From Leucoraja erinacea (Eukaryota), in the NCBI RefSeq assembly GCF_028641065.1, contig NC_073400.1:19778194-19842000 (forward strand): 63,807 nucleotides of DNA, given 5' to 3'. Below the pieces are notes generated by a model that did no database searches, was not told where the DNA came from, and worked only from the letters and a program-made list of their open reading frames with translations. The position numbers and the translations under genes were made by a program. Shown in pieces: positions 1 to 58,300 of this stretch (its first letter is position 1; each line of letters starts with the position of its first letter).

Positions 1-1147
1 GGACTGTGTGCGGATGTGTGCATGGAGAGGTACATGCAACGATGTAGAGAGAGTCACATATGTAGAGAGTTATAATAATACGGTCCATGAGACAGAGATC
101 AACTGATGCATAGAGACTGGGATAGAGATTCTAATTAAAACAAAATGAAAAAGCAAACAAGTCAGAATGTTGGTACGGAAGAGGTCAGTGCAATGTGTTT
201 CTTCTCTGTATGTATCCTCTGTCACATGCAGAACATGCTGCCTATTACCCTATCACAGGCGGGTCTGAGGAGGAGTCAGTTCCTGATCTTTTCACTTATT
301 TTAAATCTCGCATCGCTGAAACATCACTTCAAGATGTGGCACTTTTCTTTGAGGAGGATCCCCTTCCTACTCTGTGCATCCCTCATCGCCGTCTTTGTAG
401 GTAAGTACAGATATTAATGATCAACTCTGGTTATCGATGGGTATGAGGATTGTGCAGGTTTTCCAACCCATTCAACCCATTGTGGTAATTTCCTGGCTTC
501 ATGCTAGCCCAAATGCTGCCACACTGTCATAAAGGTGGGACACACTGGTCTCTCATTCGGTCCATCTCTCTGTCATTCACAGCCCCTCTTCCATTCTGCT
601 GATGTTATCTTTCTTTATCTCTCTCTCTATCGAAACACTCCTTCTCTCACTGACCCTATTTCTGTGCCTCTTTCTCCAGTTCTGTCACTTTCTGCTGGTT
701 CCTGACATCTCTACAAACCTCTCTGTAGTTAACATTGTATTGCCATTTGTGCCTCGCTATCTCTCTCCCTCCCTCCCTCCCTCCCTCCCTCCCTTCAACA
801 ACCTCCCGCCCTCCACCCATTCCACTACTCTCGCTTTACATCCGCAGTCCAGCTCTATTTTTCACTTCACATACTTCTTGTTCAGCAAAGTGTTCTGAGC
901 CTGAACCACTTCCTGCCACCATTTGATGCAATGTTTGACCAAACACCCTCCCTATCAGAACCAGCTCATTGCACCCTGACAGCAGCTTCTGACTTCTACA
1001 GGGCTCTGGGCATTCAGACTATGAGCTCTGATGGATAACAGTAATGAACCCCAACTCCAAGTGAGATGTCTAATAACAGAATGGCACAACACAGCAGAGA
1101 CAGTTCCTTGCACACACACAAATGGAGGAGGAGGAGGGGGAAGATGA

Positions 1148-1610: not shown

Positions 1611-4600
1611 TATAATATCTATCTCTCCCTCCTAACCCCATTCTCCTGCCTTTTCACCATAACCTCTAACACCTTTGGTATGGCGATATAAGGAACTGCA
1701 AATGCTGGTTTACCAAAAAAAAGAACCAAAGATATAAAGTGCTGGAGTAACTGCTGTGGGCAGCATCTCTGGAGAACATAGATAGGTGACGTTTTATCTT
1801 GGAACCCTTCCCCCGGACTGATTGTGCTGGGAAGTGGGGTGCGCGGGGATAATGTGGAAAAGAACAGTGGCCAGGCAGAAGAGTTCCCTAATATTGGAGA
1901 ATTCTATGGGTTGTAAGCGACAGATGGAATTTGAGGTGCTATTTCCAGTCTGCATGTAGCCTCATTTTGACAATGGAGGAGGTCCAGGACAGAAAGGCCC
2001 AGGTGATTTAAAAATAGTTAGCAGCCAAGAGATGCAGCAGGCCTTGGCAGACCGAGGGCTAGTGCTCGGTAAAATGGTTGCCGAATCTATGCTTCATCCT
2101 GTTGATGTAAAGGAGGCTACATCATAAACACCAGATGCAGTGGATGAGGCTAGACAAAGTGCAGGTGAACTTGTGTTCAACCAATGAAGGCAAATATTCC
2201 GTATACCTTCACCACCAGATCCACCTATGCTGCCACCTGTAGAGATCCTTGGACCGAGTATATCAAGATCCCTCTGTGTTTCAACACTCATTATGACCCT
2301 ACCATTCTTAATATGTTCTAATTCTATAACTTCCCAAAATGGCAAATTTTGCACTTATTAGAAACAAATTCCACCTGTAATCGCTCTGCCCATTTTAACA
2401 ACTGAACAGAGAGTGGTGAATCTCTGGAATTCTCTGCCACAGAAGGTAGTTGAGGCCAGTTCATTGGCTATATTTTTAAAGGGAGTTAGATGTGGCCCTT
2501 GTGGTTAAAGGTATCAGGGGGTATGGAGAGAAGGCAGGTACAGGATACCGTTGGATGATCAGCCATGATCATATTGAATGGCGGTGCAGGCTCGAAGGGC
2601 AGAATGGCCTACTCTTGCACCTATTTTCTATGTTTCTAACAGTATATTCTACAGTCTATGACCATGTTCCGAACAATGACTCCACTGATTTTTTTTTTGT
2701 GTCATCTGCAAACTTACGAATTAAACATTTTTATTGTACTCGGGCAGTAAGAATCCCAACAACAATCCCTGCAGTACACGACTGGTCACAGGGTTCCAAT
2801 AACAAAACCAACCCTCTACCAATATCTTCTGCCTCCAATCACCCAGATAATTTTGCATCCGATTGGCCAATTTTCCCTGGATCATGTGCTCTCACCTTTT
2901 GATCCAGTTTCTTGTGTGGTATTCAGTCACCCACCTGTCCTTACTTCCTCCTTCAGGGATCTGTGTAAGTGCACTCCAGGGGTCTGCTTCTTTCCAGGGA
3001 TCTGCCCCACCATATTACTCACACCCTACCATTTACCCCGTTCCTCCACCATGTTCACTCTCTCCAAACTCACCCCATCCCCCTTCATTTTCAGACCAGG
3101 TCCCATTTGCCGTGTCTGTTCCCCCTGACCCATCCGTCTATATCTGGCTGCCGGCAGTAACTTCTTTCCTCGGCCCCGGTGCAGAATGTCTTCACTCTGT
3201 TCCCCCCGTGGGCTCACTATGTGATGTAGGAACTGTGGGCCGGGTCTCTAACAGAGCCGGGAGCCAGACGATGGGCCGCATGGCCTACTCCTGTGCTCTG
3301 TGATTCTCCCAGCTCCGTTCCTCCTCCAGTCACCGAGCTCTCCTGCTGACTGCCTCTCTTGTCTCCTCAGCTGGGACTGGGGCCGCCGCTGCCAACGTGA
3401 CCGGAGCTCGGGGACACTCGGTCTCCTTACCTGCTGGGATCACAGCTGCACCGGATGTTGACAGCATTGAGTGGAGCCGGACATCACCCAACACCAAGAT
3501 AGCCAAGTGCTCGGCTGAGACTATTGAATACTATACCATCAACTACACGGGACGGGTAACTCTTCACTGCGGGAACTTCAGTCTGGAAATCCGTGATTTA
3601 CGGAGAGATGACGCTGGTGATTACCAGGTGGATGTTATTACACGTTCAGGAGGTGAAACTCGGGCAAGAGTTCGACTGGAGGTGTACGGTGAGTGAGACT
3701 GCCGCGGAAGCCCCCGGCTCCTGAACACTCCCAATTAATGGGCGAGGGCAGATCCTGTGCATTCCCCAGTTTATTGAACCTCACTGACTGCCAGTGTGCA
3801 GAGTGGGGGTCATGGTCCCAGTGTAGTGCCAGGCTGGGGGACAGACCCATCACATCCCGGACGCTGGGCCGTGAAGCATCGAATCGTGAACGGTTCCCAC
3901 GTTCTCACTGCTCCACGGGGAAGGGAATTTCCTTCAGACTCCCTGGTGAATTTTCTGGATGACACACACACCACCCACATTTGTGGAGGGATGGAATGTT
4001 TAGGGATTGGACAGAGGGACTGCTTGGGGTGGTGGTGCCAGTGCTCAGAGTGGCAGAAGGATGATGTTAGGATGGAGGAGGAAGAGCTTAGGCTGCTGGA
4101 CGGTGGGAGTATTTAGGGAAGTGGGTAGGGATCTGATTAAGCAGCTGCTTCAGTTGTAGGTGATGGCAACTTCTCGAGAGATGTTGGAGCTGCACTCACC
4201 CAGGTATTTGAAGAGTGTTCCCTTAAGTGCCTGTCCCACTTTTGCGACCTTTACAAGCAACTGCTGGGACCCGTGATAGGTTGCCAAAATTTTCAACATG
4301 TTGAAAATTCAGCGGCGACCAGAAAGACACTACGACTCTTTGGAGACCTCTCACGACCATACAGGCGACCCCTGGTGACATGTCGCGGGTGCCCACTCAT
4401 GACCATGGGAGACCGCTCGCGACCGTAGTCGTGAGAGGTCTCCAAAGAGTCGTGGCATCTTTCTGGTCATCGCTGAATTTTCAACATGTTGAAAATGTTG
4501 GCGACCTATCACGGTCGTCAGTCGCCTGTAAAGGTCGTGAAAGTGGGACAGGCGCTTTACACTCCTGACGTGCCATGTAGACGGGGAAAGGTCAGGGTGT

Positions 4601-7600
4601 CAGGAAGTGAGTCACTCCTACGGGATACCCAGCCTCAAACTTTCTCCAATAGCCACAGAGCATGTGTAATTAGTATTGTTGAGTTGCTGTTCCGTTGTTT
4701 TGATGATGTGGGACTTGCTGCTGGGAGAATCATTGAGTCTCAAGCACGGGGCTGTCTCCTGCTGACACTTCCATCACGTGGTTGCAAACTTCCCACTTAT
4801 CAGCCACTGCCTGAATGTTCTCTGGGTCCTGCTGCATGCAGTTGAGTTGATAATGGAACTGAACATTGTGCCATCATCAGTCAAATGTTGCAATGCCAGG
4901 AAGGTAATTGATGAAGCAGCTGGTTGAGCCCAGGACACTGCCCTGTGGGACACCTGCAGTGATGACCTGTGGCTCGGTTGACTGACCTCCAATGACCACA
5001 ACCATCTTCCTCCGTGTGAGGTGTGACTCACGTCAGAGTGTTAACCCCTGGATGTTCATTGATTTTAGTTTTACAAGAGCTCCCTAATGTCACTCAGTCA
5101 AACAATGCGTTGATGTTGAGGACAGTCATCCTCGCCTTATCTCTGCAACTCAGCTTTTCGTTCCACTCTTGGACCAAAGGCCTGATGAGATCTTCAGATA
5201 AGATCTTCAGCTTCAGTGAGCAGGTTATTGGTAATTGCTGTCTGATAGAAGTGTCAACAATAGCTTCTCTCACTTTGCTGGTGATCAAGAGTAGACCAAT
5301 TGGAAGGTGATCAGCTGATTGGATTCATCCTGTTTTTGAACAGCAAACATGAGGGGAATTTTCCACATTGTCACTGGATGCCAATGTTGCAAAAACAACT
5401 TGGCCAGACGTGCCACGACTTCAGGAGTACAGGTCTTCAGTACTATAGCTTGGAAGTTGCCTGGAGCTGGATATGTATAGGGGCTCTCTGCTGTTTCCTG
5501 GATAGACTGGATGCGGAGAATATGTTTCCATTAATGATTGAGTCCAGGACCCGAGGCCATAGCCTCAGAATAAAAGGACATATGGTACTTTTGGGGGACC
5601 AGCGTTATGACAGGCAGTTTGCCACTGCTACACGGGTGGTTTTAAACTGAATAAGGGGGGTGGGGTGTCAAATGGGATAGTCGAGGACGGAGTTAAAGAG
5701 AAAGAGAGTAAAGGGATGGTTAATGACCCCAGAATTAACGGGAAAGGAAGCTCACAAAGGGATAGGAGAGTATGGCCAAGTGTAAGAGGGATCGATGTGA
5801 AAGGTGAGATGTGTTAGGAATTAAAAGTTATTGTATATGAATGTGCGAAGTATAAGGAGTAAAGTAGATGAGCTTGAGGCTCAGTTAGAGTAGCAATGTT
5901 ACAAAATTTTGAGATTTAAAAAATCAAGTCTGTAATTTATCCCATCAGATAAAGCATAAAAAGAAGTTTAATTTGGCACCTAATTCACTTTCATATCTCA
6001 AGTATTTAAAAAGTTATGGCCATTTTCATACTCGGAAATTAGCATCTTGTTCCCTATTGATTTTCTATGGACATAACAAAAAAGCTGTGATCGTGAACAG
6101 TCAAAAGCACATAACCTTCTTAAAAATTAAGAGAACTGAATGAAATTTCAGTTATCATAGATTGAAGCATTCTGAAACAAATATAAAATAATCTTACTCG
6201 GATGACCTGAAATTAAAGCATATAATTAGTTAGTTACCCACTTGTAGCTAATTTCAAACTTCAATTACTAGATCTAAACATCTATCCATTTCTTAATAAA
6301 TGATTAACATTTTTAAATAGCCTAAGTGTCCAAATAATATTCACAAATAATTCACAATAAAACATGATTTTTAAATCTCATTTACATTAATTTATAGGCC
6401 AAATGGAAGGAATTTAGTGTTCAACTGCTGTGAATTAAAGTCCATTTTAAATCCGCTTTCTTGTGGGATCCTGTGAACGCGCTGGTTTAGAACGTTCACA
6501 TTGTGGTAGATTTGTGCTCTCAAATGCCCAGAAAAATACTGCGGGATATAATGGGCCCAAAATTAGCTACTCGCAATATTAAACTTTGTATAAAGTGATC
6601 TTAAGAAGCCCTTTTTAATGTAAAAAAATACTGCTACCCTTCAGATTTCTGCTCTATAGCTGGTTGCGAGCCGTCGGGGGTTTAGAGGTTAATTTTTAAA
6701 CTACTATAGCACTTAGGAAAAACTCGTAAAACTAATAATAGCTCATGTGAGGGAACCTACCAGCGAATTTTCGTTAATAATTAACTAGGCTGAACAAACT
6801 CGATTTGAACAGCCTAGAGAAAATCACGTTTTAAACCCGCCCCCCTCTAAACGGCGCCAAAATCGAGCACACGGGCTGGGACAGATTTTCAGTGACGCTT
6901 CAGGTACGCTTTGCAACATACCTAGTTAGAGGTTGGTAGATATGACATTGTGGAGATTACTGAGACGTGGCTGCAGGTGGATCGAGCCTGGGAACTTAAT
7001 ATTCAGGGTTATACATCCTATAGAAAGGACAGGCAGGTGGGCAGAGGAGGGGGAGTAGCTCGGCTGGTGAGGGATGGAATTCAGTCCCTTGCGAGGGAAG
7101 ACATAGGGACTGACGAGGTAGAAGTCTCATAATTGGTGTCAGGGACAGATACACCTGCCACTGGTAGCCTGGGTGGCCAGGTGGAGGTGCTACCAACCCA
7201 TTCCCATGGTGGACATTGAAATCCCCACCTAGAGGACATTCTGGCCTTTGCTGCTCTCAGGACATTTTCTAAGTGTCGTCCAACATGAGGGAGAGCCAGC
7301 TCATCCGCTGAGGATTGAGGGCAGTGATCAGGAGATTTCCCTGCCCATGTATCTGCTTTCAGTGAGGGTGACTCTGCAACCCCAGATCTCTGCTCTGTCC
7401 CTTTTGACAGTTTCTCCATTCTAACTACTTGGTTCCCCTCTCGGAATGTGTCCCATCACAAGACTGGGAATAACTTACTATTTACACCCCCGATTTGTGA
7501 GCTGTTTCAGTCTCTGTGGGGGAGACGGTGTGGGACCCAGGATCTGCATGGTGCTGGATTCACTCTGGAACATGGCACACTATCCCAGTCTGGGTCTACG

Positions 7601-10600
7601 CCCATCACAGTCCCAGGGCTGACACTCTTGGACCAGGTCCAGGACCGGCCTGGGCTGGGTCACACTCAGGTGCATAAGGGACACAGGGACCATTTGCAGA
7701 ATTGAAAAAAACCCTGCATCTGGATAGAATCTCCAGGTTCAATCATCCGTGATTGAATGGCGGAGTGGATTTGATGGGCCAAATGGTTTAATTCTACTCC
7801 TATCACATGATACAGAGCCATAAACAGGACATGGTGGATAGTTGGTGGATGATTGCGGGCAGTAGTAGTTGGAAAGGGGGCGCATCACGTGTGGACTTTG
7901 TGCAGCAACAACTCGCTGAACTGAAGGGGGGGGGGGGAAAGAGTTAAACTGGTAGGTGGAAATGAGCTGGGATCGGATTAAAGTTCACCTGTGGCTGTTG
8001 GAGACGGGGTGTTGGGTATTGTGGGGCCCACATGGACCTCCTTTACTCATCTTTCTTCTCTCTGCCCCAACCTCAGAGCCCGTGGAAGGAACACAGATTA
8101 AGGCTCAGAACATCACCGGGATCTGCAACCTGACCTGCTCCGTTACCTCAGGCGACCCCACCAGCTTCAGGTGGTGGAGGGGACAAGAACCTCTGGGAAA
8201 TGACAGCACCCACCACGTCTCGCAACATGGAGAGACGGTAGAGGTTCATCACACAGCAGGGGTCGGGGACGTTGAGTACAGATGTGAGGCCAGGAACCTG
8301 GTCAGTGAGGGCACGGCACAGATCCTGCTGACAGACAACTGCAAACAGGCCACATTTGGTGAGAGAAACACACTGCTGATACTGGAAATGTGTAATAAAA
8401 ACAAAAAATATCGGAAACACTCCGAAGATTCTACATCCAATGATATGAGAGAAAGATAAACAACAGTCCAGTTCGAAGATTTTATGTCAGCAATTGGAAA
8501 CGTTAGAAATCAAATGTATTTTATGTGACAGAGGTGGAATCGGAAATACAAAGAGAATGCCAATGATAGCGACAGAGAGACACACATAACAGAGGCGATG
8601 GTGGTGCTGGCTGAGAGATGGTGAATACTTGTTTTCTGTACAGAACCTGATTGTAGAAGGTGCAATTACGAGATGAATTACAGAAGAGAGAAAACAATCC
8701 ATGCTGGAACTGTAGGATTCCAAACTTTTATTCAACATCACGCTGAACAGACCTGCAAGCTTAGGTGTGTCCAAAATACAAAAAGAGAAATAGCAATTAG
8801 AATCTACACGAAATAAGTTAGCTCCAAAGAGAGAGTCACTGAGGGAAGAGATGTGTCTTAGGGCACTTTGTTACAAATAAGAAAGAACAGAAACTAATGA
8901 AGGTGCACTGTTAATAGATTTCCATAAAGCATTTGATGGAGATGTTCCATCAAAAGTTATTGAAGAAAATAAAAGCTTGTAGGTCAGCAGGATTTGTGTT
9001 GGAATGAACAGAAGGCTGGCAGGATAACAGGTAACAGAGTAGGTATAAATGAACAACATATAATATTGCCATAGGGCTTGTTCTGGAGCCTCCACTAGTA
9101 TATGAATTTTAACATGGCTCGTGTAAAAGGCCCAAAATGTAGGAAAGTAAGATATGAAGTGGACATAAGGTAATTATTAAAGGATAATAAGGCAAGATAA
9201 GTGAGCGGGCAAGGATCTAACAAATGTAGAATAACATGGTAAATTGTTTAATAACAAAGAAGCACATTACCCAACTAGTAAGTGATTGCAGTCATAACGT
9301 CATACAGACGTTAGGTCAAAGACTATGACTGAAGACGAGTCTTCAACCTAAAATGTTAACTGTTTCTCTTGCCACAGATGCGGCCTGACCTTCTAACTAT
9401 TTTCAGCATTTTTGGTTTTTACTTAAGAATGCAGCTGGAACTGAACAATTTAAGGCCCTCTTTAATCCTGCTTGATGTGTGTTTATAATGTCTCTCAAGC
9501 TCTGCTGACCCAGCAAGGGAGTAAATAAAATAATATTTACGTGTGTTGTTCACATAGGGAGAAAATAAAGCCATATTTGTGAATATAACATTGTCGTGTT
9601 TATCTCCACCTGGTGCTGCTTCATGTCCTCTGCGCTCCTCAGTAAACCAGGGTTGACCCCCCTCGGTGACAGGAATGGTGGCGTGAACCATGAGGTTACA
9701 GTCTGCGTGGTGGACAGTTCTGCTGCTGTCCACAGGAACGCATAGACCCCAGTTGTCAGCTGCATGATCTATTCTGAGCCTCTCCCACTGAGCTCAATTG
9801 TAGGTGCCACACAATATGATGGGGATGAGCCTTTGGTGTGAAGACCAGACTTGTCTCCACAAGGACTGTACAGTGATAAGTCTCATCATTGGTGTCAGGG
9901 ACAGATGCACCTGCCACTGGTAGCCTGGGGATGGCCAGGTCAGGCCAGATTATCCCTGGTCGCAGCCCACCATGGCCCGCTGTCCCTCAGGAGTTGGAGG
10001 CTCAGTCTGTGGAGGTGCTACCAACCCACTCCCATGTTGGACATTGAAATCCCCACCTAGAGGACGTTCTGGCCTTTGCTGGTCTCAGGACGCATTCTAA
10101 GTGTGGTCCAACATGGGGTAGAGCTAGTTCATCTGCTGAGGATGGGGGGGGGGGGGGGCAGTGATCAGGAGATTTCCCTGCCCATGTATCTGCTTTCAGT
10201 GAGGGTGACTCTGCAGCCCCAGATCTCTGCTCTGTCCATTTTGACATTTTTTCATTCTGACAACTTGGTTCCCCTCTCAGAATGTGTCCCATCACAAGAC
10301 TGGGAACAACTTGCTATTTACACCCCCGATTTGTGAGCTGTTTCAGTCTCTGTGGGGGAGACGGTGTGTGACCCAGGATCTGCATGGTGCTGGATTCACT
10401 CTGGAACATGGCACACTATCCCAGTCTGGGTCTGTGCTCATCACAGTCACAGGGCTGACACTCTTGGATCAGGTTCAGGACCGGTCTGGGCTGGGTCACA
10501 CTCAGGTGCACAAGGGACGCAGGGACCTTTTGAGGAAGTGAAAAAAAACCCTGCGCCTGGAGAGAATCCCCAGGTTCAATCATCCATGATTGAATGGTGG

Positions 10601-13366
10601 AGTAGATTTGATGGGCCAAATGGTTTAATTCAACTCCTATCACTTAAGATACAGAGCCATAAGCAGGACATGGTGGAGAGTTGGTGGATGTGAAGAGGGC
10701 GCATCACGTGTGGACTTCTCACAGCAACAACTCGCTGAACTGAGGGGGGGGGGGGGGGGGCAGGGAAGAGTTAAACTGGTGGGTGGAAATTAGCTGGGAG
10801 TGGCTTAATGTTGACGTGGCTCTTGGAGCCGGGGTGTTGGGTATCGTGGGGTCCACAAGGATCTCCTTTACTCATCTTTCTTCTCTCTACCCCATCCTCA
10901 GAGCCCGTGACAGGAACACAGATTAAGATTCAGAACATCACCGGGATTTGCAAGCTGACCTGCTCCGTGACCTCTGGCGACCCCACCAGCTTCAGGTGGT
11001 GGAGGGGAGGAGAACCTCTGGGAAACGGCACCATCCATCGCCCCCGGCGACACGGAGAGACGATAGAGGTTCATCACACAGCAGGGGTCGGGGACGTTGA
11101 GTACAAGTGTGAGGCCAGCAACCTGGTCAGTGAGGGCACGGCCCAGATCTGGCTGACGGACGACTGCAAACAGGCCACATCGGGTGAGTGAAACACACTG
11201 CTGATTTTGGAAATATGCAATAAAAACAGAAGATATTGGAAATGCTCCAACGGTTCAAAAGCCAATGATATGAGAGAAAGATAACCAACATTCCAGGTCG
11301 ATGATTTTATGTCAGAAATTGGAAAAATTAGAAATCAAATGTATTTTATGTGACAGAAAGGTGGAATCGGAAATACTGAGAGAATGCCAATGATAGCGAC
11401 AGAGAGACACACACATAACAGAGGCGATGGTGATGCTGGCTGAGAGATGGTGAATACTTGTTTTCTGTACAGAACCTGGCTGTAGAAGGTGCAAATAGGA
11501 GATGAATTACAGAAGAGAGAAAGAAATCCATGCTGGAACTGTAGGATTCCAAACTTTTATTCAACATCATGCTGAACAGACCTGAAAGCTTGGGTGGGTC
11601 CAAAATACAAAAAGTGAAATTGCAATTTGAATCTATGTGAAATAAGTTAGCTCCAGAGAGAATCACTGAGGGAAGAAATGTGTCTTAGGGCACTTTGTTA
11701 CAAACAAGAAGGAACAGAAACTAATGAAGGTGCACTGTTATTAGATTTCCATAAGGCATTTCATGGAGATGTTCCATCAAACGTTATTGAAGAAAATAAA
11801 AGCTTGTAGTGCAGCAGAATTTGTGTTGGAGTGAACAGAAGACTGGCAGGATAACAGGAAACAGAGTAGGCATAAATGAACAACATATAATATTGCCAAA
11901 GGGCTCGTTCTGGAGCCTCCACCAGTATATGAATTTTAACATGACTCGTGTAAAAGGCCCAAAACGTAGGAAAGTAAGTTATGAATGAGCATAAGGTAAT
12001 TATTAAAGGCTAATAAGGCAAGTTAAGTGAGCGGGCAAGGATCTAACAAATGTAGAATAATGTGGGTAACATGTTCAGACTGAAGAAGGGTTTCGATCCG
12101 AAATGTTGCCTAATTCCTTCGCTCCATAGATGTTGCCTAACCCGCTGAGTTTCTCCAGGATTTTTGTCTACATTTGATTTTCCAGCCTCTACAGTTCCTT
12201 CTTAAACATACATATAACTACAATCAAGCTATACACAATCAAAAGAAAAATACCGGAATGCAGAATATATATTTGCAGCATTGTAATGTTAGTTTCAAAG
12301 AAAAAGTCCAATGTTGGCAATGTGGTAGATTGCAAGATCAGGATTATACCTGGCTTATGGGTGGACCATTCAGTAGTTTGACTCCTGAGTTAGAGTCCTG
12401 AGGCTGGTAGTGTGTGGTTGTAAATGTTTGTATAGTCTGCCCAATGGGACCAGTACTTGATCCATAGCTTTCTAGCCTTGGAAATGTATGCCCTTGCCCA
12501 GAGGCTTTAATACTGTGAGAATATTTGCCCCACCACCTTCTTAGGGAGTGTGTTTCAGATTTTGTCTGCCCTCCAGGCGAAACAAATCTTCCACAGATCC
12601 TCTATAACCTTTCACTACTCTCCTTAAATATATATCTTCTATTAGAAAAATCTATTCACACTACAGGACTCAAAATTAACGATTGCCTGGGTGCCATTGA
12701 CCACTCAAAGCGCCGCCAGGCAACCAAACACCGAGTCATTTTACCCGGCTTGGCAACCAGATACTGGTTTGTACCAAAGATAGACACAAAAAACTGGAGT
12801 AACTCAGCATGTCAGGCAGCATCTCAGGAGAAAGGGAACGAGACGTTTTGTGTCGGCGGTGACGGCTGTATTGCGTGAGAAAGATACTAGGTGTGTGGTG
12901 ACGAAGGGTCGAAGCGAATGACGGGCACCGAACAGCGGCTCCATCTCCTCCTCCTCCCGCACCCCGCCCGCCCTGATAGCGGCCGCTACTTGCAAATGCG
13001 CTAACGGCGCTTAAAAAAAACCACTCCCGCACGCCGAGGTTGGGAGGAGGGAGGGAGGAGGCCTCGGCATGCGGGAGGGTTTGTTTTGAAAGCGGTTATC
13101 GCCGTTAGCAGGTTTGCAAGCAGCGGCCGCTATCAGGGAGGAGGAGGAGATGGAGCTGCTGCCGCTGCTGTGCAGGACCCGTCATTCGCTCCGACACTTC
13201 TGAAGCAGCTGCACCAAAGATACTATAACTATAGGATCTTCGAGCTGCACAGCTCGGCCCCGTTGGCCGGCGGAGGAGGGAGGCGGTGGCAAGGAATTCC
13301 CAATGGCCTAAGCAGCGGGACTATGTTGTCCGAGGAGCGCTGACCTTCCTTCCCCCAACTCGCCCC

Positions 13367-13413
<47 letters not shown>

Positions 13414-16400
13414 GTACGCCCCCCCCCTTTATCCTGAGACCCCTCCTCTACATCCCGCACTGATCCCCATTTCCGCCTCAATATTCAGTCCTCACTGACA
13501 TCCCCTGTGCTCCCCTCCCCATCTACCCCATCTATTCATCCTGCGCTGATCACCCTAACCACCTCGCATTAATTCTCCTGCCACCATACCCCCCCCCCCC
13601 CCCCCCCCCCATCCATCCTACACTGGTTCCCCAATTCACCCTGTACTTACCCCTTTCCCATCCATCCTGCACCTCCTCCATCCATCCTGTACTGATTCAC
13701 CCATCATCCATCCTGTACTAATCCACGCATTCATCCCGTACTGGCCCACCCTCCATTTACACTGCACCTTCCCCCATTCATCCTGTAGTGATTCCCCATT
13801 TATCCTGCACTGACCCTCCGATCCACACTGTACTGACCCCCCCCCCCCCCTTCCATTCATCCTGCACTGATCTCCCCCCCCCCCCATCCATCCTGTACTG
13901 ATCCTCCCATTCAAGAAGAATGGGGCGAAAGGTCTGAAGAAGGGTCTCGACTCGAAACGTTGCCTATTTCCTTCGCTCCATAGATGCTGCCTCACCCGCT
14001 GAGTTTCTCCAGCACTTTTGTCTATCCCCATCCATCCCGTACTGAACCCCCCATTCAACACCACTGACATCACCTGTGCTCTCCCCTCACAATTTTACCT
14101 ACTCCAACCAACACGTATTAATTCACCTGCCTCAATCCATCCATTCTGCACCGACTGCCTTCTAACCATTCTGCCTTTTAATTCCCAATGTTATTATTTG
14201 TTTTAATCTATAAAGATGGATTAATTAAATTGTGAACACATGAAACATTAAAACCGCAGTGTTCGATTGTCACTGTTACCGTTGACAAGTTAATACAGAA
14301 TTTATTTTAACGGCAAATCAATGCTCTTAATATGGAGTATCAGTACTGTAGTTATTTAATGAGCAACATTCACAACTATACGTACGCATATATGTTACCA
14401 TGGTCCAGGATTTATTGACACGGGTTGATCATACGCTGAATAATCCAACCACATTTTTGTTTGGAAGTGGAAAGAACTAATAGAAATTACAACGCAATGT
14501 GTAAAAAGAGTTGAGATACTGTCTTATAATTTTGCTGCATGTCATTGTGAGATATATCATGTCTTGATTGGTGAATGTCTAGTTTGTGACTTTACTTGAA
14601 GCAGAAATAATATGTGAATGCTTCATTGAGTATAATTCTGACTGGTAACTACGCACTTCGTCCGAGCACATTATTGCACGCGTCATGCAAGCCATCTTAA
14701 ATGACCACCTAAACTGTCATTTGGCAACCTAAAAAGCTGCCAAGGGAGCCCTGCACTATCTCCCCTATCTCGGTCCCTCATAATGTGATGCATCTATAAT
14801 AGTACTCCTCCACTCCCAGCCTCCTCCACTCTAAAGAAAAGAAACCCAACCAGTCCAGTCTCCGCTCATAACTGAAACATTCAATCTCAGACATTTTGGT
14901 GAATATCTGCACTGCTTCAGTGAAATCACACCCTTTCTATAGTATGATGGCCAAAATTGTACACAATATATTCCAGCTGGCTTAATCAATGTATTATAAC
15001 ATTGATCTCTGGAGGGTCTCATACGACAGAGGAACTGAGTACAGGTGCATAGTTCCCTGAAAATAACATCACAGGTTGACAGGATGGTGAAGAAGGCTTT
15101 TGGCACTGTGCCGTTTATCAGTATAGGCATTCAATATAGAAGTTGGGATGCTATGTTGCAGTTGTACAAAACCGTGATGAAGCCACCATTGGAATATTGA
15201 GTTCAATTTTGGTCAACATGCTATAGGAGATATGCCATTGTTGGAAAGCGTACAGAAAGATGTACAAGGACGTTGACATGACTCAAAAGACAGAGAGGTA
15301 GAGCAGGCTAGGACTTTATTCCTTGGAGAGTAGGAGGCTGAATGATCTTACAGGGGTGTATAAAATCACGTGTAGCATGGATAGGGTGAACATGGTCTTT
15401 TCTCCAGGGCTTTAGAATCAAGAAATAGAAGTCATAGCTTTAATGTGCGAGGGGAAAGATTTAGTGGAAACGTTTGGACAATGTTTTCCACACAGAAGGT
15501 GGTACATAAATGGAATGTGCAACCTGATGAAGTGGTTGCAGCGGGCACCATAATAACATTTAAAAGACAATAAAGTATTTCTTCTATCCTTATCTCACCT
15601 TTTGTCTTTTAAATCGCTGGACTTTGCCCAACTTTCTGCCTATCAACCCCCTTTCCTGTTTCTACCTATCATTTGCCGGGCTTTGCCCAGCACTCATCCA
15701 GCATTCCCCATGCGCCCCTCCCCCATGCACCACAATCAGTCCGAAGAAGGGTTCTGACCCGAAACATTACCTATCTATGTCCCCCAGAGATGCCGCCTGA
15801 CCCACTGAGTTATTCCAGCACATTGTATCTTTTTCTGGTAAACCAACATCTTCTTTCACCTTTATGGTGCAGCACTAGTCAAATACATCCTATCAAAAAT
15901 ATATTCTTCCACCTTTACCCTTTGCCTCCCATCACCAAGCTAATTTTGGATCCAATTAGGTAAATCACCTTGGATTCCACGTGGGGATGGAGGGGAATGT
16001 TTTGAGGGGTGGATAGAGGGTGGACTGAGGGCACCGAAACTGTATTAATGGAGGACTTCATCAAAACCCATGTGGCTAGATGGATCCCATCAACTCTCTG
16101 TCCGTGGGAGAGCTAGAATGGAAATGGAATAATTAAATTTTGACTCCTCTGTTGTTTTAGGACGAAGGAGATCATGGAATCAAATTATTATTATTATTTC
16201 GGTTGTTGCAGCTTGTGTAGCTGTTTGCATCATTTTTCTGGTCTGCTTCATCGTAAGGAGGAGAACAGGAGGAGGTCAAAACGCTCTAGTCACTGGAGGC
16301 AAGTATCTGATACCCAGCCCATGAGCCAGAGTGGTCGCAGTCCCAGGAAAGACTGCACATGGTGCTAGATGGGAGATGATGAATTGGTGCAGGAGAGGAC

Positions 16401-17971
16401 AGAGGATGAAATGGAGAAGGTGCACTCAGGGAGAAGAGGAAGTGGTGAGGGGAGGGAATAGTGGGTAAATGGGGTAGAGATTTGAGAACAGAGAAATATG
16501 AAGGTTGGAAAGGGAAATGAGTCACAGCACAAGGGTTGATTGCAGGTAGGGGAAGGGGGCAGTATCGGGAGGGAAGGAAGTACAAAGGTGGGAGGGACTG
16601 GGATGATCAGGAGGTAGATCGGGAAGGGCTAAGGGTGAGGAGGGGAGGGATAGAATGGTTGACAGGGATGAGGGTTAAAGTGACTGGGATGGAAAGGAGA
16701 TGATGCGTGGTGAGGGCAGGTACTCATCCTTCTTACTCTCCCCCACAGGCCCATCAAACATGGAGACTATCTATGCACAACCCCAGCCATCACAGAGACA
16801 TCCAGCCAACAGACAGCCTCGGGAGGAGAACGAGATGGTAAAGGGACACATATTGCCTCAGGGATGGGCGATCTGAACCCCTCAGTTCTCTGGGGCCATC
16901 CTTACTATCTCTGCAGCAGGCAGGACACAGAATCCCATATAGGCACAACACAACCTCACACTGAATTAGAAATCATAGTTGAGTAAGCTCTCACCGAACT
17001 CTGCCACAGTTCAAAGCAATAACAAGGCACAGAAATATCCCAAGCACTCAATGAAAAAAATTCAGATCAGACTGAAACTTATCTCAGCAACATCCACTTC
17101 AGGTTGGACAGGAGATGCTGCTTCATCCATCTCCACTCTCACTGGTAATACACTGTCCTCCCCCAAATCCCCAGTGATTGAGGTAGACTGTCTCTACACC
17201 CAGTCACTGGGGTACACTGTCCCAACACACAGTTACTGGGGTACATTGACCTCACACACCCAGTTACTGGGGTACACTGTGTACCCCCACACACCTAGTT
17301 AGTGTTTACGCCTTCATGAATTTGCCCATGCAATGGGTGACTAAGGATAATATAGAACAGTACATACAGAAACAAGCTCCCTGCAGCCCATAATATCAAC
17401 ACTGAACAAGAAGCCACGTTAAACTAATCTCTGTTTGTATGTGATCCACATCCATCCATAATTGTGCCTGTTCAAAAGCCTCTTAAGTGGGGCATTACTG
17501 GCACCCAGCATCTCTGAGTAAAATAATTGTCCCGCACATTTCTTTTAAAATTTGCCCTTCCAAATAAGAATGTAATTCTTCTGTTTTCAATACATATGAC
17601 AATTAAACACTTTTGAGTCTCGGCTCACCTTAAAGTTATGCCCTCTAATATTTGACATTTCCACCCTGGGAGAAAGGTTCTGACGGCCTGTCTTATCTAA
17701 CGCTCTCATAATTTATAAACTCTAATCCTCTGAACTCTCTCTGCTTTCTCAGCAGGCTCAGAACAAGGAGAGGCTGGAGATTCCTGCCACCATATATGAC
17801 ACAGTGAAATCTCCTGTGATGCCAGTTCCTGGACCAGCCAGACGAGGAGGGCACAGAAACCCCAGGGAGAGCATGATCCAAGAGTATGAAACAGTGAATT
17901 ATTCTGGGATCCCACACTTTGCCTCAATCAAGGGTAGAGGACGAGCCCATGGAAAATCCCACCCTTTATAG
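334..17971 (+). CDS. Gene 1: CD2/SLAM-family receptor, leader-IgV-IgC2-IgC2-TM-ITSM tail (~463 aa); join(334-400,3371-3688,8077-8358,10902-11183,16161-16298,16749-16837,17756-17971)
   Basis: Seven exons with AG acceptors and GT donors (one GC or weak GT), all phase-compatible, total 1392 nt with no internal stop. V domain lacks the B-F disulfide, C2 domains have 4 Cys, and the tail has TxYxxV; these are CD2/SLAM hallmarks. Orthology cannot be assigned by eye. Confidence 0.85.
2405..2640 (+). mobile_element. CR1 LINE 3' end
   Basis: GAGAGTGGTGAATCTCTGGAATTC...GAATGGCCTACTC..TTTCTATGTTTCTA, the same 3' terminus as 40510-40988. Confidence 0.85.
3371..3688 (+). CDS. Gene 1 exon 2, CD2/SLAM-type IgV domain
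   Basis: Pyrimidine tract and CAG at 3368-3370, donor G|GTGAGT, 318 nt, phase 1-1. Translation includes VTGARGHSVSLP, IEWSR, GRVTL, FSLEIRDLRRDDAGDYQV, RLEVY. Confidence 0.93.
4226..4556. mobile_element. PIF/Harbinger-type fold-back MITE
   Basis: Long TIRs AGTGCCTGTCCCACTT / AAGTGGGACAGGCGCT, internally palindromic, TTA on both flanks (4223-4225 and 4557-4559). Confidence 0.8.
4570..5450 (-). mobile_element. Degenerate non-LTR retrotransposon RT fragment
   Basis: Minus-strand ORF fragment ending RMTVLNINALFD resembles the LD.K.AFD RT motif; many stops. Confidence 0.55.
5891..6924. mobile_element. Non-autonomous TIR element inserted in a CR1 endonuclease fragment
   Basis: Imperfect TIR TAGCAATGTTACAAA / TTTGCAACATACCTA; flanking duplication GTTAGAG at 5884-5890 and 6925-6931. 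The CR1 frame (ITETWL) resumes after the insert. Confidence 0.8.
7122..9232 (+). repeat. C2 cassette duplicate unit 1
   Basis: From AAGTCTCAT..TGGTGTCAGGGACAGA to GGATCTAACAAATGTAGAATAA, colinear with 9878-12060. Confidence 0.92.
8077..8358 (+). CDS. Gene 1 exon 3, IgC2 domain copy A
   Basis: CTCAG acceptor, G|GTGAGA donor, 282 nt, phase 1-1. EPV..ICNLTCSV..FRWWRG..YRCEARNLVS..DNCK. Confidence 0.9.
9878..12060 (+). repeat. C2 cassette duplicate unit 2
   Basis: Same landmarks as unit 1; exon offset is 2825 nt. Confidence 0.92.
10902..11183 (+). CDS. Gene 1 exon 4, IgC2 domain copy B
   Basis: CTCAG acceptor, G|GTGAGT donor, 282 nt, phase 1-1, open frame. 17 aa differences from copy A by hand count. 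Confidence 0.9.
12664..14753 (+). mobile_element. hAT-like non-autonomous element, copy 1
   Basis: Termini CAGGACTCAAAATTAAC...AGCCCTG; GC-rich core and ATCC-rich degenerate repeats; inverted homolog of 18265-20023. No clean TSD, so the superfamily is tentative. Confidence 0.65.
13930..13965 (+). ncRNA. Minimal hammerhead-ribozyme-like motif
   Basis: AGGT-CTGAAGA-A-GGGTCTCGACTC-GAAACGTT-GCCT, with a possible 4-bp stem I (AGGT/GCCT). Confidence 0.5.
16161..16298 (+). CDS. Gene 1 exon 5, transmembrane segment (IIIIISVVAACVAVCIIFLVCFIV-RRR)
   Basis: TTTTAG acceptor at 16160, hydrophobic stretch followed by a basic stop-transfer RRR. The 3' end is either GAG|GCAAGT (16298) or GAG|GTCAAA (16274); both are phase 1. 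Confidence 0.85.
16749..16837 (+). CDS. Gene 1 exon 6, cytoplasmic, ETIYAQP motif
   Basis: CCCCACAG acceptor, ATG|GTAAAG donor, phase 1 to 0. Translation GPSNMETIYAQPQPSQRHPANRQPREENEM. Confidence 0.85.
17196..17300 (+). repeat. Short minisatellite with palindromic core CCCAGTTACTGGG
   Basis: ACACCCAGT(C/T)ACTGGGGTACA repeated about 3-4 times in gene 1 intron 6. Confidence 0.8.
17756..17971 (+). CDS. Gene 1 exon 7, cytoplasmic, ITSM TIYDTV and EYETV; true 3' end uncertain
   Basis: CTCAGCAG tandem acceptor, phase 0. AQNKERLEIPATIYDTVKSP...IQEYETVNY...SHPL* with TAG at 17969-17971. Confidence 0.75.
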   Translation, partial: AQNKERLEIPATIYDTVKSPVMPVPGPARRGGHRNPRESMIQEYETVNYSGIPHFASIKGRGRAHGKSHPL

Positions 17972-21599: not shown

Positions 21600-24500
21600 T
21601 CCAATTACGCGCAATAAACTCAACCAATGTTAAAAGCGTAATGTCCTATACTAACACGATTAACTATATAGCAGGAAGGGTGGGGGAGGATAGACATATA
21701 TTTTAATTACTAAATACTAATAATGAATTAACTAACATACAGGTAAATGAAAAGTGTAATTTTTGACGAGGTATTTTAACCCATAATTACTTTTATTTTA
21801 ATCCAAATCTTCTACCTTCCCTTTTATTTTATTCTATTTTAAACTGTTCAGCGATGACCTGATATGATAATTTTGGTAACAATTAGAGGGAACCGACTAA
21901 CGTTGGGTCAAATTCTAATAGGGGGATAAGGCCCAGTGCATAATCTCATCGACGGAGGTCAATTTAAAAACAAATCTAGCTACCTTAGGTGGCCTTTTTG
22001 TAATTTATCGCTTTTTTGATAAATTACATTCACTTTTTTTGTTTATTCACAATTATGTGTTGTATGACTCAATCATTTTTATGTACACTTTATTTTATGT
22101 TTTTCTCTTTCCCTTAATTATGTTTAATAGTGTCAGGAGATGTAGAACTGCTGTAGAAATTATGAAGGACAACTCTGGATTCGGGATTCTGAGGTACTTG
22201 GCTGCATCACATGAATCATACAGTCTGGTAATAATAGCCAATGCAAGATAATAGTCGAATAAATATCGGAGGTCTCACCTTCTGTAGTTGGAACATCAGA
22301 GGTGCGAATGAGCCAATTAAAAGAGGTAAAATTCTGGCACAATTAAAATCATTAAATATGGATATTGCTTTCCTACAAGAGACACATTTGAAACAACAAA
22401 CTCAGATCAGATTAAGGGCAAATTGGATAGGTCAAACCTATTACTCCTCATTCACCTCTAAAGCAAGAGGCACGGCCATTATAATTCGGAAGGGCATACC
22501 TTTTAAATTAAAGAATTCCATATCTGATAAAGAGGGAAGATATGTTATAGTCACAGGAGAAATTTACAATACACCATTAACTATGATAAATATTTACGCG
22601 CCTAATTTTGATAACCCACAATTTTTTAGGAAAATCATAGATTTAATCGCAGAGCATAATTTTCAAAATATAATAATGGGGGGAGATTTCAATTGTGTTA
22701 TAGATCCATACTTAGATAAATCAATAAAGCTAGGGAAGCGTCTTGTTAAAACTAAGACCTGTGAATTTTTAAATACTTATATAAAAAATAATAACATAGC
22801 TGATGTTTGGAGAATAGCAAATCCAAGTGGTAGGGAATACTCATTTTATTCATCAGTTCACAAAACGTATTCGCGAATTGACTATTTCTTATTGGACACA
22901 AAATTGATCCCGTATACGAATAAACCATCATATCATAATAGTATTATTTCTGATCATTCACCATTGACTTTTATACTTAAAATTGAGGGAATGCCGAGTA
23001 TAAAACCTTTTTGGAGGTTCAATGCACACATATTAAATAACCCGCAGGGTTATGAGTATATAAAAGAACAAACAAAACTTTTTTTCGAAATAAATGACAC
23101 ACCGGGTATTTCTGCACCGCTATTATGGGAAACCTTCAAGGCATATATTCGCGGTGTCATAATCTCTTACCAAAGTTTTCAAAATAAGGAAAATAAAAGA
23201 GAACTTCAGCGGATAGCACAGAAAATAAAATTATTAGAACTGGACAATGCAACTGACCCAACCATAAATAAACATAATAAGATAACTTTATTGAAATATA
23301 AAGTCAATAGAATACTATCGGCTAGAGTAATAAGATTATTCCAAATTACAAAACAAGCACACTTCGAATTTGGGGATAAGCCACATAAACTACTTGCGAG
23401 GCAACTGAAGCAACGAGAAAAGGAAAAAACTATTACAAAAATTAAATCGGACAAGGGTGAGTTTCTAACATTGCCTAAGGATATTAATAAGAGGTTTGGC
23501 CAATTTTATCATAATTTATATACATCTAAAATAAAGACTGATGTAAGTAAAATTACAAATTTTTTAGATAATTGCAAGCTCCCAAAATTGGATAGTTTAG
23601 AACAAGAGCAATTAGGAGCACGGATTACTAGTGAAGAAATAAAACAAATAATAAACTCACTGAAAAATGGGAAGACCCCAGGACCAGACGGCTTTAGTAA
23701 TAAATTTTATAAAAGATTTCAGGAGTCAATTGTACCAAGATTATTCAATTTATACATGCAGGCTTATACTGAAAATAAACTACCAGAAACCCTAGCAGAA
23801 GCAACAATAACGCTTATACCAAAAAAAGATAAAGATTTAGATGAACCGGGTTCTTATAGAGCTATTTCACTTCTAAATACGGATCAGAACATTTTAGCAA
23901 AGATTCTAGCTAGAAGGCTAAATAATTATATTAACAATTTAATAAATACGGATCAAACGGGATTTATACCCAAAAGGCAATCATTTAATAATTTGAGAAG
24001 GCTTTTTAATATAATGTACTCTCATAATGAGGACAATGAAGATATCTCAGTGGTCACGTTGGATGCAGAGAAGGCATTTGATCAAGTAGAATGGCAGTAT
24101 TTATACAAGGTACTCCAAAAATTTAATACGGGAGAGAATTTTATTAGATGGATTAAATTACTTTATGATAGACCTACGGCAAGAATATTAACTAACAATA
24201 CGCTATCTCCAAAATTTTACTTATCAAGGGGTAATAGGCAAGGGTGTGCCTTATCACCATTGCTATTTGCCCTTATGATAGAACCGCTGGCCGAAAGGAT
24301 TAGAAATCACCCGAATATTGACGGATATAACAGCAAGGACTCAAAGAATAAAATTTAATTATATGCTGATGATATCCTTTTATATATTACTAATACACAA
24401 ACGTGTATACCCACCTTATTAACACTAATTGAGGAATTCGGCTCTTTTTCAGGATATAGAATAAATTGGAATAAAAGCGAAATTATGTCTTTAAAACCAC

Positions 24501-40988: not shown

Positions 40989-41147
40989 GGAAGAGGTCAG
41001 TGCAATGTGTTTCTTCTCTGTATGTATCCTATGTCACATGCAGAACATGCTGCCTATTACCCTATCACAGGCGGGTCTGAGGAGGAGTCAGTTCCTGATC
41101 TTTTCACTCTTATTATAAATCTCGCAGCGCTGAAACATCACTTCAAG

Positions 41148-41208
41148 ATGTTTTCTTTGAGGAGGATCCCCTTCCTACTCTGTGCATCCCTCATCGGCAT
41201 CTGTGTAG
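41148..41208 (+). CDS. Gene 2 exon 1, signal peptide [20 protein letters not shown](A)
   Basis: Paralog of 334-400 with an in-frame 6-nt deletion. Donor TAG|GTAAGT intact, phase 1. Confidence 0.8.
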
Positions 41209-52309: not shown

Positions 52310-52397
<88 letters not shown>

Positions 52398-55300: not shown

Positions 55301-58300
55301 TGTTTTTGCTACCAAAGTTGATAACCTCACATTTATCCACATTAAACTGCATCTGCCATGCATCAGCCTACTCACTCAACCTATCCAAGTCACCCTACAT
55401 TCTCATCTGTCATCTGCAAATTTGCTAATGTTACTTTGAATCCCTTCATCTAAATCATTGATGTATATAGTAAAAAGCTATTAAAGAACAACAGAAGGTA
55501 ACTAAAAAGGCAATATCGTGAAAAAATATAAAGAGTAAGAAAGAGGCAAGAGTGGAAGTTGGATCACTGGAGAATGATGCAGGAGAAGTGACAATGGGGA
55601 ATAAAGAAATAGCAGAGGAGTTAAATAACTTTTTTGCGTCAGTCTACACAGTGGGAGACACCAGCAATGTCCCTGAAATTCAAGAGAGCCAGGGGTTGGA
55701 AGTTAGTGGGGTGGTTATTACGAGGCAGATGGTGCTTGGGAAACTGAAAAGGCTGAAGTCACCTGGACCAGATGGACTGTACCCTAGTCTTCTGAAAGAG
55801 GCGGCTTTAGTGATTGTGGAGGTATTGACAGTGATATTTCATAAGTTCATAGGTTATAGGAGTAGAATTAGGCCATTCGGCCCATCGAGTTTACTCCACC
55901 ACTCAATCATGATTGATCTCTGCCTCCTAATCTACAATTTTACTTTTTTTTCAAGAATCACTAGAGACAGGAGAGGTCCTAGATGATTGGAAAGTTGCCA
56001 ATATTACCCTATTGCACAAGAAGAAGCAAAGCAGAATAGTGGGATCTATAGGTCGGTTAATCTGACTTTGGTCTAAAATCTTGGTAAGATTTTAGAGTCC
56101 ATTATAAAAGATGAGGTTACAGAGTACTTAGAAGTTCACGATAAAATAGGTCAAAGTCAGCATGGCTTTGTGAAGGGGAGGTCTTGCTTGACAAATTTGC
56201 TGGAATTCTTTGAAGAAGTAAATAGGAGGACAGACAAAGAGTCAGTAGATGTTATTTACTTAGATTTTCAAAAAGCCTTTGATAAGGTGCCACACGTGAG
56301 ACTGATAAGGAAGTCGAGAGCCCACGGTATCAAAGGGCAGATACTAGCATGGATAGCAGGTTGGCTGCATGGCAGAAGACAAAAAGTGGCAATAAAAGGT
56401 TTTTTTTCTGGTTGGCAGCCAGTGACTAGTGACGTTCCGTAGGGGTCGATGCTGAGGCCGCTACTCTTCAAGTTGTATATGAATGATTTGGACGAGGGGA
56501 TTGAAGGCTTTGTGGCCAAGTTTGTGGATGATATGAAAATAAGTGGAAGGTCAGGTAGTGCAGAGAAAGCAAAGAGTCTGCAGAAGGGCTTGGGATTGTG
56601 GGCAGACAAGTGGCAGATGGAATATAGTGTAGCAAAGTGTGGAATGATGCATTTTGTTCAGAGGAATAAAGGTGCAGACTATTTTCTAAATAGGGAGAGA
56701 ATCCAGAAATCGGAGGTGCATGATGGTCGGTGTGGACTCGGTGGGCTGAAGGGCCTGTTTCTACACTGTATCTCTAAACTAAACTTCTATAAGATGTATA
56801 TTATACAGATCATCCTCGTGCTCCAAAGAATAAAGTCCTAGCCTGCCCAAACTCTCCCTATAGCGTTGGCCCTCACGTCCTGGCCACATTCTTGTAAATC
56901 TTCCCTGTACTCTTTCCAGCCGAACAGCATCCTTCCTGTAGCAGGGTGACCAAACCTGAACTCCATTAACCATTCGTCAGCTCACCTGCCCAACTAATCA
57001 AGATCCTACTACAATATGTGACCCAGGATCTGCACGTGCTGGATTCACTCTGGAACACAGCACGCTACCCAGTCTGGGTCTGTGTCCGTCACAGTCCCAG
57101 GGCTGCCACTGTTGGCCAGGTTCTGGGCCGGTCTGAGTTGGGTCACACTCAGGTTTTTAAGGAACACTGGGACCACTCACAAGTGACAAAAGATATGGAA
57201 CTGGAGAGATTCCCAGGGAACAGAGCCATAAACAGGACACAGTGGAGAGTTTGTGGATGGGTGCAGGGAGTGTTCGGGAAGGGGGCACATCACACGTGTG
57301 GACTTGACGTGTGGGAAATGACATCACCCATCACCTCGTGGGACATGGAAAGACAATACAGGTTCATCACACAGCAGAGGTCGGGGACGTTGTGTACAGG
57401 TGCGAGGCCAGGAACCAGGTCAGTGAAGGCACGGCACAGATCCGGTTGAAGGACGTCTGCAAACAGACCACATCTGGTGAGTGTCAGAGGGCGAATCAGG
57501 TTTGAAGAATGTGGTGGTTTAATTGTTCATTGAGACAGTGCAGAGGGAGCTTCACATTTTGTTTTCCCTTCCAAGGACTTTATTCAGTAATTGCATATTA
57601 CAGTGTACCAGAAAGTACAAAAATGTTCAAGTCACATTGCATCAGGCAATCATCATAAAACACTAATGGCATCTTTACAATGCATTCATTGTAAAGATGC
57701 GGAAGGTCATTGTTCACGGAAGGCCACCAGAGTCCCCGTGGACACCACATGTTCCCTCTCCAGGGACACAATGGGAGCCAACAAAGAGCCATTGATCTTG
57801 ACAAGGCACTCTGCAGCAGTGTTCTATCCATGCTCTGTGAGTGTGTAAATGGACAGCGCTGTCACAGTTATTTGATGTCAGTCTACAGTGCGGGCCCCGA
57901 GTTCTTGCTGAGTTTGTGAACAAGGCCCAGTGCAGTCTCTCTGATGAGTGATCCCCTCTTCTTTCACCAGGGTTGAGTAGCTGTCTCTGTGGATGTTGGT
58001 TGAGGGCCACGGTCGTAGCCGTCCTGCTTCTGATTCTCATCTCAGTCACTGTCGCCACCCACATCATCAGTGAGTGCTGTTTTTAAGTGTTTGCAGTTAA
58101 AATGTAGAAACAATGAACTGCAGCCATTGTTTAATTCAGAAAAGGTCACAAAGTGCTGGAGTAGCTGCAGCAAGGAAACAGGTTCGCTTGGACATCTCCG
58201 AACTCTCCCTACCGTTTCTGAATATCACCGTCTCCATCACAGGAGACAGACTATTGACCGACATCTACTACTAACCTACTGACTCCCATAGATATCTAGA

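Follow-up and report, generated by a model that had tools for sequence, protein, structure and literature searches.

In mammals, receptors of the CD2/SLAM family, such as SLAMF1, SLAMF5/CD84, CD2 and CD48, have a V domain without the canonical disulfide and a membrane-proximal immunoglobulin (Ig) domain with four cysteines, and mammalian SLAM receptors are further characterised by a type I transmembrane segment, by an immunoreceptor tyrosine-based switch motif (ITSM, TxYxxV) in the tail and by clustering of their genes. The membrane-proximal C2 domain carries a two-disulfide pattern in this family, whose further traits are binding that is homophilic or directed at CD2-family ligands, and recruitment of SAP/EAT-2. 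The gene described here lies on the + strand of a 63,807-nucleotide stretch of the genome of the skate Leucoraja erinacea (contig NC_073400.1, positions 19,778,194 to 19,842,000; below, the window, in whose numbering all positions are given), and it shares with them the type of V domain, the four cysteines, the transmembrane segment, the ITSM and the clustering, with CD84 as its best match. It is unlike the mammalian receptors in having two tandem membrane-proximal exons, A and B, which make a three-domain ectodomain possible, and in a C2 domain that by sequence and predicted fold looks like a generic I-set/C2 domain. We consider it likely that this locus records an old tandem duplication of the membrane-proximal Ig exon in a complete skate SLAM-family gene, and that both copies have been kept as usable coding exons.

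Lengthening of a SLAM ectodomain through internal duplication is also known from Ly9/SLAMF3 (V-C2-V-C2), with the difference that Ly9 doubled the whole V-C2 pair, whereas the skate gene doubled only the C2 unit and possesses a single V exon (3371-3688), so that only the stalk grows. The models called 'HEPACAM family member 2-like' in Rhinoraja longicauda (XP_078277110.1) and Hypanus sabinus (XP_059828667.1 and isoform X1) belong to the same family, the Rhinoraja one coming from the same syntenic locus; they differ from the window in that they go back to independent events with other unit sizes and ages, the pair in the window being much older (91% versus 98% identity). Mutually exclusive tandem-duplicated exons (PMC9013439, PMC9741552) likewise consist of neighbouring, homologous exons that share length and phase in a single gene, but the skate pair has no feature that would enforce an exclusive choice, be it a frame shift, a short intron or incompatible splice-site types.

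To judge from the sequence, exons A and B belong to a complete receptor gene of the CD2/SLAM family, in which a leader, the V exon, C2-A, C2-B and a transmembrane exon are followed by a tail with an ITSM (Table 1). The V exon matches the Pfam families V-set (2.9e-12) and Receptor_2B4 (26.5 bits, with a cut-off of 21), and its best solved relative is SLAMF5/CD84 (2pkd, 5.6e-9), followed by CD2, CD48 and SLAMF6. The canonical cysteine pair is absent from its domain, there being no cysteine at the B-strand (SVSLPAG) or the F-strand (DYQVDV) position. At the other end of the molecule, TIYDTV, a canonical ITSM, stands at residue 405 of the 464-residue form, and the last exon is 92% identical to the tail of the Amblyraja radiata ortholog P0153; the forms with one C2 domain are 86% identical, over the full length, to the Amblyraja 'SLAM family member 5-like' protein. 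The C2 profile meets the C2 domain of SLAMF6 (2if7, residues 122-192) at only 3.3e-4, and titin, CEACAM and others score better; four conserved cysteines are present in both exon A and exon B. The earlier note on this DNA, made from the letters alone, had called the gene a SLAM receptor, and this assignment is now supported by the Receptor_2B4 match of the V exon, by CD84 as the best solved relative, by the ITSM of the tail and by the SLAMF5-like ortholog of Amblyraja. The transmembrane exon ends in a GC donor (GGAG/GCAAGT) that is identical in three skates (window 16298/16299, Amblyraja L003:23251 and Rhinoraja L001:36784). The NCBI model of the Rhinoraja gene, P0001, reads through this donor and stops early, at ..GGKYLIPSP.

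The two exons are carried by direct repeat units whose starts are 2819-2837 nt apart, by the spacing of the repeat family. Blastn aligns 7181-9248 with 10009-12075 at 89.2% identity over 2093 nt and additionally pairs 7122-7182 with 9878-9940. Exons A and B are identical at 249 of their 282 nucleotides (88%) and at 82.6% of amino acids, and their starts are separated by 2825 nt. Each is preceded by a long polypyrimidine tract ending in cctcag, is followed by gtgag, and has an open frame to which the preceding exon contributes one base. Pfam finds I-set/Ig_3 in both, and for exon A, AlphaFold2 with an alignment of 25 relatives predicts a seven-strand Ig sandwich (predicted local distance difference test score 82.8), whose nearest solved structures are generic I-set/C2 domains. 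Between the units, the comparison with the single-unit locus of Amblyraja divides the junction into a continuation of the 3' flank of the unit (9250-9308), a filler (9309-9592) with a piece resembling a short interspersed nuclear element (SINE) within it at 9327-9414, and a counterpart of the sequence immediately upstream of Amblyraja's single unit (9593-9877).

Very high-copy repeats occupy 6924-7122, 10579-10623 and 12076-12213, where contigs of all runs show a huge depth and many loose ends. Non-allelic homologous recombination between SINE copies was considered as the mechanism of the duplication and left as unproven: each unit has a SINE-like piece on its 3' side (9327-9414 and 12076-12213), and the left breakpoint was destroyed by the repeat at 6924-7122.

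Table 1. Coordinates of the SLAM-family gene, its duplicated units and the third unit copy (positions in the window)
Feature	Position	Strand	Remarks
Leader exon	334..400	+	ATG at 334; ends in phase 1; donor gtaagt; matches the leader of Amblyraja ortholog P0153
V exon	3371..3688	+	318 nt, phase 1-1; CD2/SLAM-type V domain
Duplicated unit A	7122..9248	+	Direct repeat and blastn; left edge adjoins repeated element 6924-7122
C2 exon A	8077..8358	+	282 nt, phase 1-1; donor TTG/gtgaga
Unit junction	9249..9877	.	Comparison with the Amblyraja single-unit locus
Duplicated unit B	9878..12075	+	Direct repeat and blastn; followed by SINE 12076-12213
C2 exon B	10902..11183	+	282 nt, phase 1-1; donor CGG/gtgagt
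Transmembrane exon	16161..16298	+	Starts in phase 1; GC donor GGAG/gcaagt
Cytoplasmic exon	16749..16837	+	Contains TIYAQP
Last coding exon	17753..17971	+	ITSM TIYDTV, EYETV; stop TAG 17969-17971
Third, degraded unit copy	57017..57481	+	Blastn; in the neighbouring SLAM-like gene; missed in the earlier note

Because each exon is 282 nt long and of phase 1-1, any combination of A and B stays in frame, and the spliceosome could include A, B or both without a break. When joined in silico, the exons give 464 amino acids with both C2 exons, 370 with either one and 276 with neither, with the same stop in all four cases, and the A-only and B-only products of 370 residues differ at 17 positions, all of them in the stalk domain. 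The products would thus be V-C2 receptors of 370 residues, or a V-C2-C2 receptor of 464 residues with a stalk longer by one Ig domain; with both exons spliced in, the single binding V domain would be placed one Ig domain further from the membrane. On these points the earlier note has held: it had described two open 282-nt phase 1-1 C2 exons with intact AG/GT sites, in units of about 2.1 kb set 2825 nt apart, and had expected in-frame isoforms with A, B or A+B, which the symmetric exons and the lengths of 370, 370 and 464 residues bear out.

The history of the pair can be read from two other skates, since the locus is syntenic with L003 of Amblyraja radiata and L001 of Rhinoraja longicauda. Amblyraja has a single C2 unit (L003:18185-21170). 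Rhinoraja has a head-to-tail tandem of its own (L001:21518-32855), with a unit of 5.65 kb, copies 97-98% identical and boundaries unlike those in the window, which doubles the C2 exon at the syntenic locus and which, by this comparison, represents a separate and younger event. The flanks of the window are 94.4-95.2% identical to those of Amblyraja and about 89.7% identical to those of Rhinoraja; A or B against the Amblyraja unit gives 92.7-93.0%, and A against B gives 91.25%, counted in substitutions. As the A-B identity sits between the two flank values, the duplication in the window predates the split from Amblyraja and postdates the split from Rhinoraja, and both copies would have been retained since then as usable exons.

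The single unit of Amblyraja is a mosaic, A-like at its 5' side and B-like at its 3' side (Fisher p 0.038): over the first 750 nt it differs from A at 31 positions and from B at 47, and over the last 750 nt from B at 48 and from A at 61. This is the pattern that an unequal crossover between A and B leaves, and we therefore suggest that Amblyraja probably lost one copy secondarily in this way. A clean phylogeny of A, B and the Amblyraja unit, with Rhinoraja as the outgroup, was attempted and given up, as the conflicting site patterns number 11, 18 and 8, and these were taken as mosaicism instead. In a tree of C2 domains the duplicates cluster by lineage, with A and B of the window together, the four domains of Hypanus together and the Rhinoraja domains apart. 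Both C2 exons of the window and three C2 domains of Amblyraja are without two residues (CN--LTC versus CNFTLTC, residues 17-18; 8124-8129 and 10949-10954 in the window), which are kept in all other aligned relatives, including Rhinoraja and Hypanus, and exon A is still predicted to fold.

Exon A, searched against 1.84 billion representative proteins, returned mostly proteins of sharks and rays with one C2 domain and a length of 260-370 amino acids, named by NCBI as SLAMF5-, SLAMF8-, Ly9- or CD48-like, which agrees with the statement of the earlier note that SLAM members are normally V-C2. Ly9-like V-C2-V-C2 forms are also present among the shark and ray relatives (P0003, P0012). At the syntenic locus of Rhinoraja the predicted NCBI model P0001 is V-C2-C2 followed by a transmembrane segment. 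In Hypanus sabinus the predicted model P0151 has four C2 domains, and its isoform P0002 has three, being shorter by exactly one cassette of 95 amino acids and otherwise identical. The gene of the window had earlier been called an atypical V-C2-C2 member; it does hold two C2 exons, but V-C2-C2 and V-(C2)3-4 models already exist in NCBI for Rhinoraja and Hypanus, so the arrangement is less singular than was thought. The copy number in related species, which the earlier note had wished to see checked, is one C2 exon in Amblyraja, two in Rhinoraja and four in Hypanus. By these gene structures the cassette is labile in number in skates and rays, and was gained independently in Rhinoraja and in Hypanus. 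In the public annotation these ray genes bear misleading names, for example 'HEPACAM2-like', and among the literature on the SLAM family in cartilaginous fish, skate, shark, teleost and Xenopus we found no paper on these genes.

Retention of both exons is reflected in their sequence. There are 29 conserved columns, defined as those kept in at least 90% of 23 relatives; apart from the shared deletion of two residues, exon A retains all 29 and exon B 28, the change being H48R, and of the 17 amino acid differences between A and B just one affects such a column (hypergeometric p 0.012). Both exons also retain the four cysteines and the motifs WW and YxCEAxN. Neither exon has a stop or an indel, with 2.3 indels expected at the intron rate, and in simulation a single neutral copy remains intact with a probability of about 0.13-0.16. 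The exons are also the faster-changing part of the units: exon A has accumulated substitutions at about twice the flank rate (20/282 versus 64/1727, Fisher p 0.015), and over 7893-8408, that is, the exon and its near flanks, the A-B divergence is 12%, as compared with about 7.4% in the rest of the unit. Such a rate may fit a rapidly evolving immune gene, yet it may also permit some relaxation.

According to the strongest alternative, one copy is a decaying or silent pseudo-exon, always skipped, so that the gene would be an ordinary V-C2 SLAM member whose second exon has merely not been broken yet. The simulated chance of neutral intactness is not so small as to speak against it; the donor of exon A is the weaker one (gtgaga) and its substitution rate is doubled, B is changed in one conserved column, the window's third unit copy is already degraded, and one copy suffices in Amblyraja. 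Still we regard this alternative as unlikely, for the duplication has outlasted the split from Amblyraja, both exons keep the four cysteines together with the WW and YxCEAxN motifs, and RNA traces of both were found.

These traces are as follows. In run X6 a contig of 180 nt matches 8186-8358 and continues with seven letters unlike the intron; since the match ends exactly at 8358 and is followed by unlike letters, the donor of exon A must have been used. The same run holds nothing on exon B. In the 5-6% that was read of each of the raw runs X24 and X35, exon B is covered by about 206 letters and about 96 letters, respectively, in the orientation to be expected of a + gene, and those of X35 end approximately at the B donor. 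Depth on exon A is zero in the 5-6% read of X24 and X35, which is no evidence of silence.

A second alternative is strict mutual exclusion of the tandem exons, by which the gene would encode two V-C2 receptors, each with a membrane-proximal domain of its own, and V-C2-C2 would never arise. It would be in line with the finding of A and B in separate RNA data sets only, never joined, and mutually exclusive splicing is known to arise from exons duplicated in tandem (PMC9013439). The numbers of reads are, however, far too small to carry it, and nothing in the anatomy enforces exclusion: 282 is 3 x 94, the intron between A and B measures 2543 nt, and the splice sites of both exons are of the ordinary GT-AG type. 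Relatives, moreover, are modelled with two to four C2 domains in series, and we find strictly exclusive use rather improbable.

The physical reality of the tandem can be assessed in run X4, another sample, filed under another organism label, whose contigs cover every bin of the stretch. Its contigs 8953-9687, 9658-9877 and 9848-10158, each overlapping the next by 30 nt, span the 3' flank of A, the spacer and the 5' part of B, and the word depth is about 40-60, alike on the units, the spacer and the flank, although a contig depth is not a copy number. That the tandem is an assembly artefact, with two haplotypes (the case that the earlier note wished to see excluded) or two paralogs stitched together, has a negligible probability in our view, for even if the evenness of depth rests on that contig word depth, the units differ by 8.75% substitutions and 15 indel events, far past allelic difference, the contigs of this independent sample run through the junction, and the spacer contains the sequence that precedes the Amblyraja unit.

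We come back to the proposal of an old duplication with both copies usable, against which several observations have to be counted. The ratio of nonsynonymous to synonymous change (dN/dS) is 0.6-1.5 for every pair in the family, true orthologs included, and so does not separate a live exon from a dead one; the statistical case for constraint on B by itself is weak, with about 0.2 when judged by the conserved columns and about 0.16 when judged by intactness. In no RNA data set do both exons appear: A is represented in X6 and B in X24 and in X35, by one to three reads in each case, and these reads, matched at 95% likeness, could stem from a close paralog that was not seen. No read or contig joins A to B (8358>10902), with three reads being needed for an entry in the joint table. 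The multi-C2 gene models of NCBI are predictions, and the protein collections yielded no annotated protein from this genome: a collection of 5.8 billion proteins, queried with exon A alone and with the exon in its open reading frame (ORF) of 167 amino acids, gave only relatives and one unspliced Logan ORF, and a full-length search with Rhinoraja P0001 flagged no protein as the window's own, the closest relatives that it returned all coming from skates. A V-C2-C2 fold predicted for P0001:62-365 in single-sequence mode scored 50 on the local distance difference scale and was set aside.

With so few RNA reads, neither co-inclusion nor alternative use of the exons can be preferred. Both exons may reach protein. 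A substantial V-C2-C2 form is quite possible, a little short of even chances in our estimate, and a gene making mainly alternative single-C2 forms is nearly as likely.

The consequences would depend on the form. SLAM/CD2 receptors are thought to owe their function to two-domain ectodomains that match the gap of about 15 nm in which antigen receptors engage their ligands. In mammals, CD48 changed from an enhancer into an inhibitor of T-cell recognition when it was elongated (PMC2195552), and, by analogy with this reversal, stalk length and synapse spacing could matter for the skate receptor too. If the longer forms are really made, the locus would be a natural evolutionary experiment on the spacing rule, with a stalk that has repeatedly gained and lost Ig domains under a constant V domain and a constant ITSM tail. 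One may go further and imagine a regulated switch of height and identity, in which A-only, B-only and A+B versions of a single ITSM receptor are produced by different leukocyte types and in which the repeated C2 gains (two here, two in Rhinoraja, four in Hypanus and back to one in Amblyraja) reflect selection on ectodomain length; we hold this to be doubtful, and, if true, it would put the size-segregation model of immune-cell contacts to a natural test. Should one exon be used at a time, what is seen would be an ordinary exon duplication in a fast-evolving immune gene cluster, giving two receptors that differ at 17 stalk residues.

Elsewhere in the window, a second SLAM-like gene extends over 41070-61031 on the + strand. 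Its leader block (41070-41207) is a near copy of that of the first gene, its V exon (47748-48050) is divergent, its transmembrane exon (57970-58071) is free of tyrosine and its last exon lies at 60987-61031; it is of the same type as Amblyraja P0161 and P0152. In this gene lies the third copy of the duplicated unit, which has lost the 5' half of its exon, so that what remains is a truncated C2 exon at 57299-57478 (3' half at 57311-57475), with a stop just upstream. Between both SLAM-like genes, at 22241-25812 (+), there are long ORFs of 705, 253 and 183 amino acids that resemble those of long interspersed nuclear elements and are endonuclease/reverse-transcriptase-like. A region of about 2.2 kb at 42365-44554 is of low complexity, with ORFs rich in Pro, Ser and Leu on the - strand and in Gly, Glu and Arg on the + strand, and is probably a simple, non-coding repeat.

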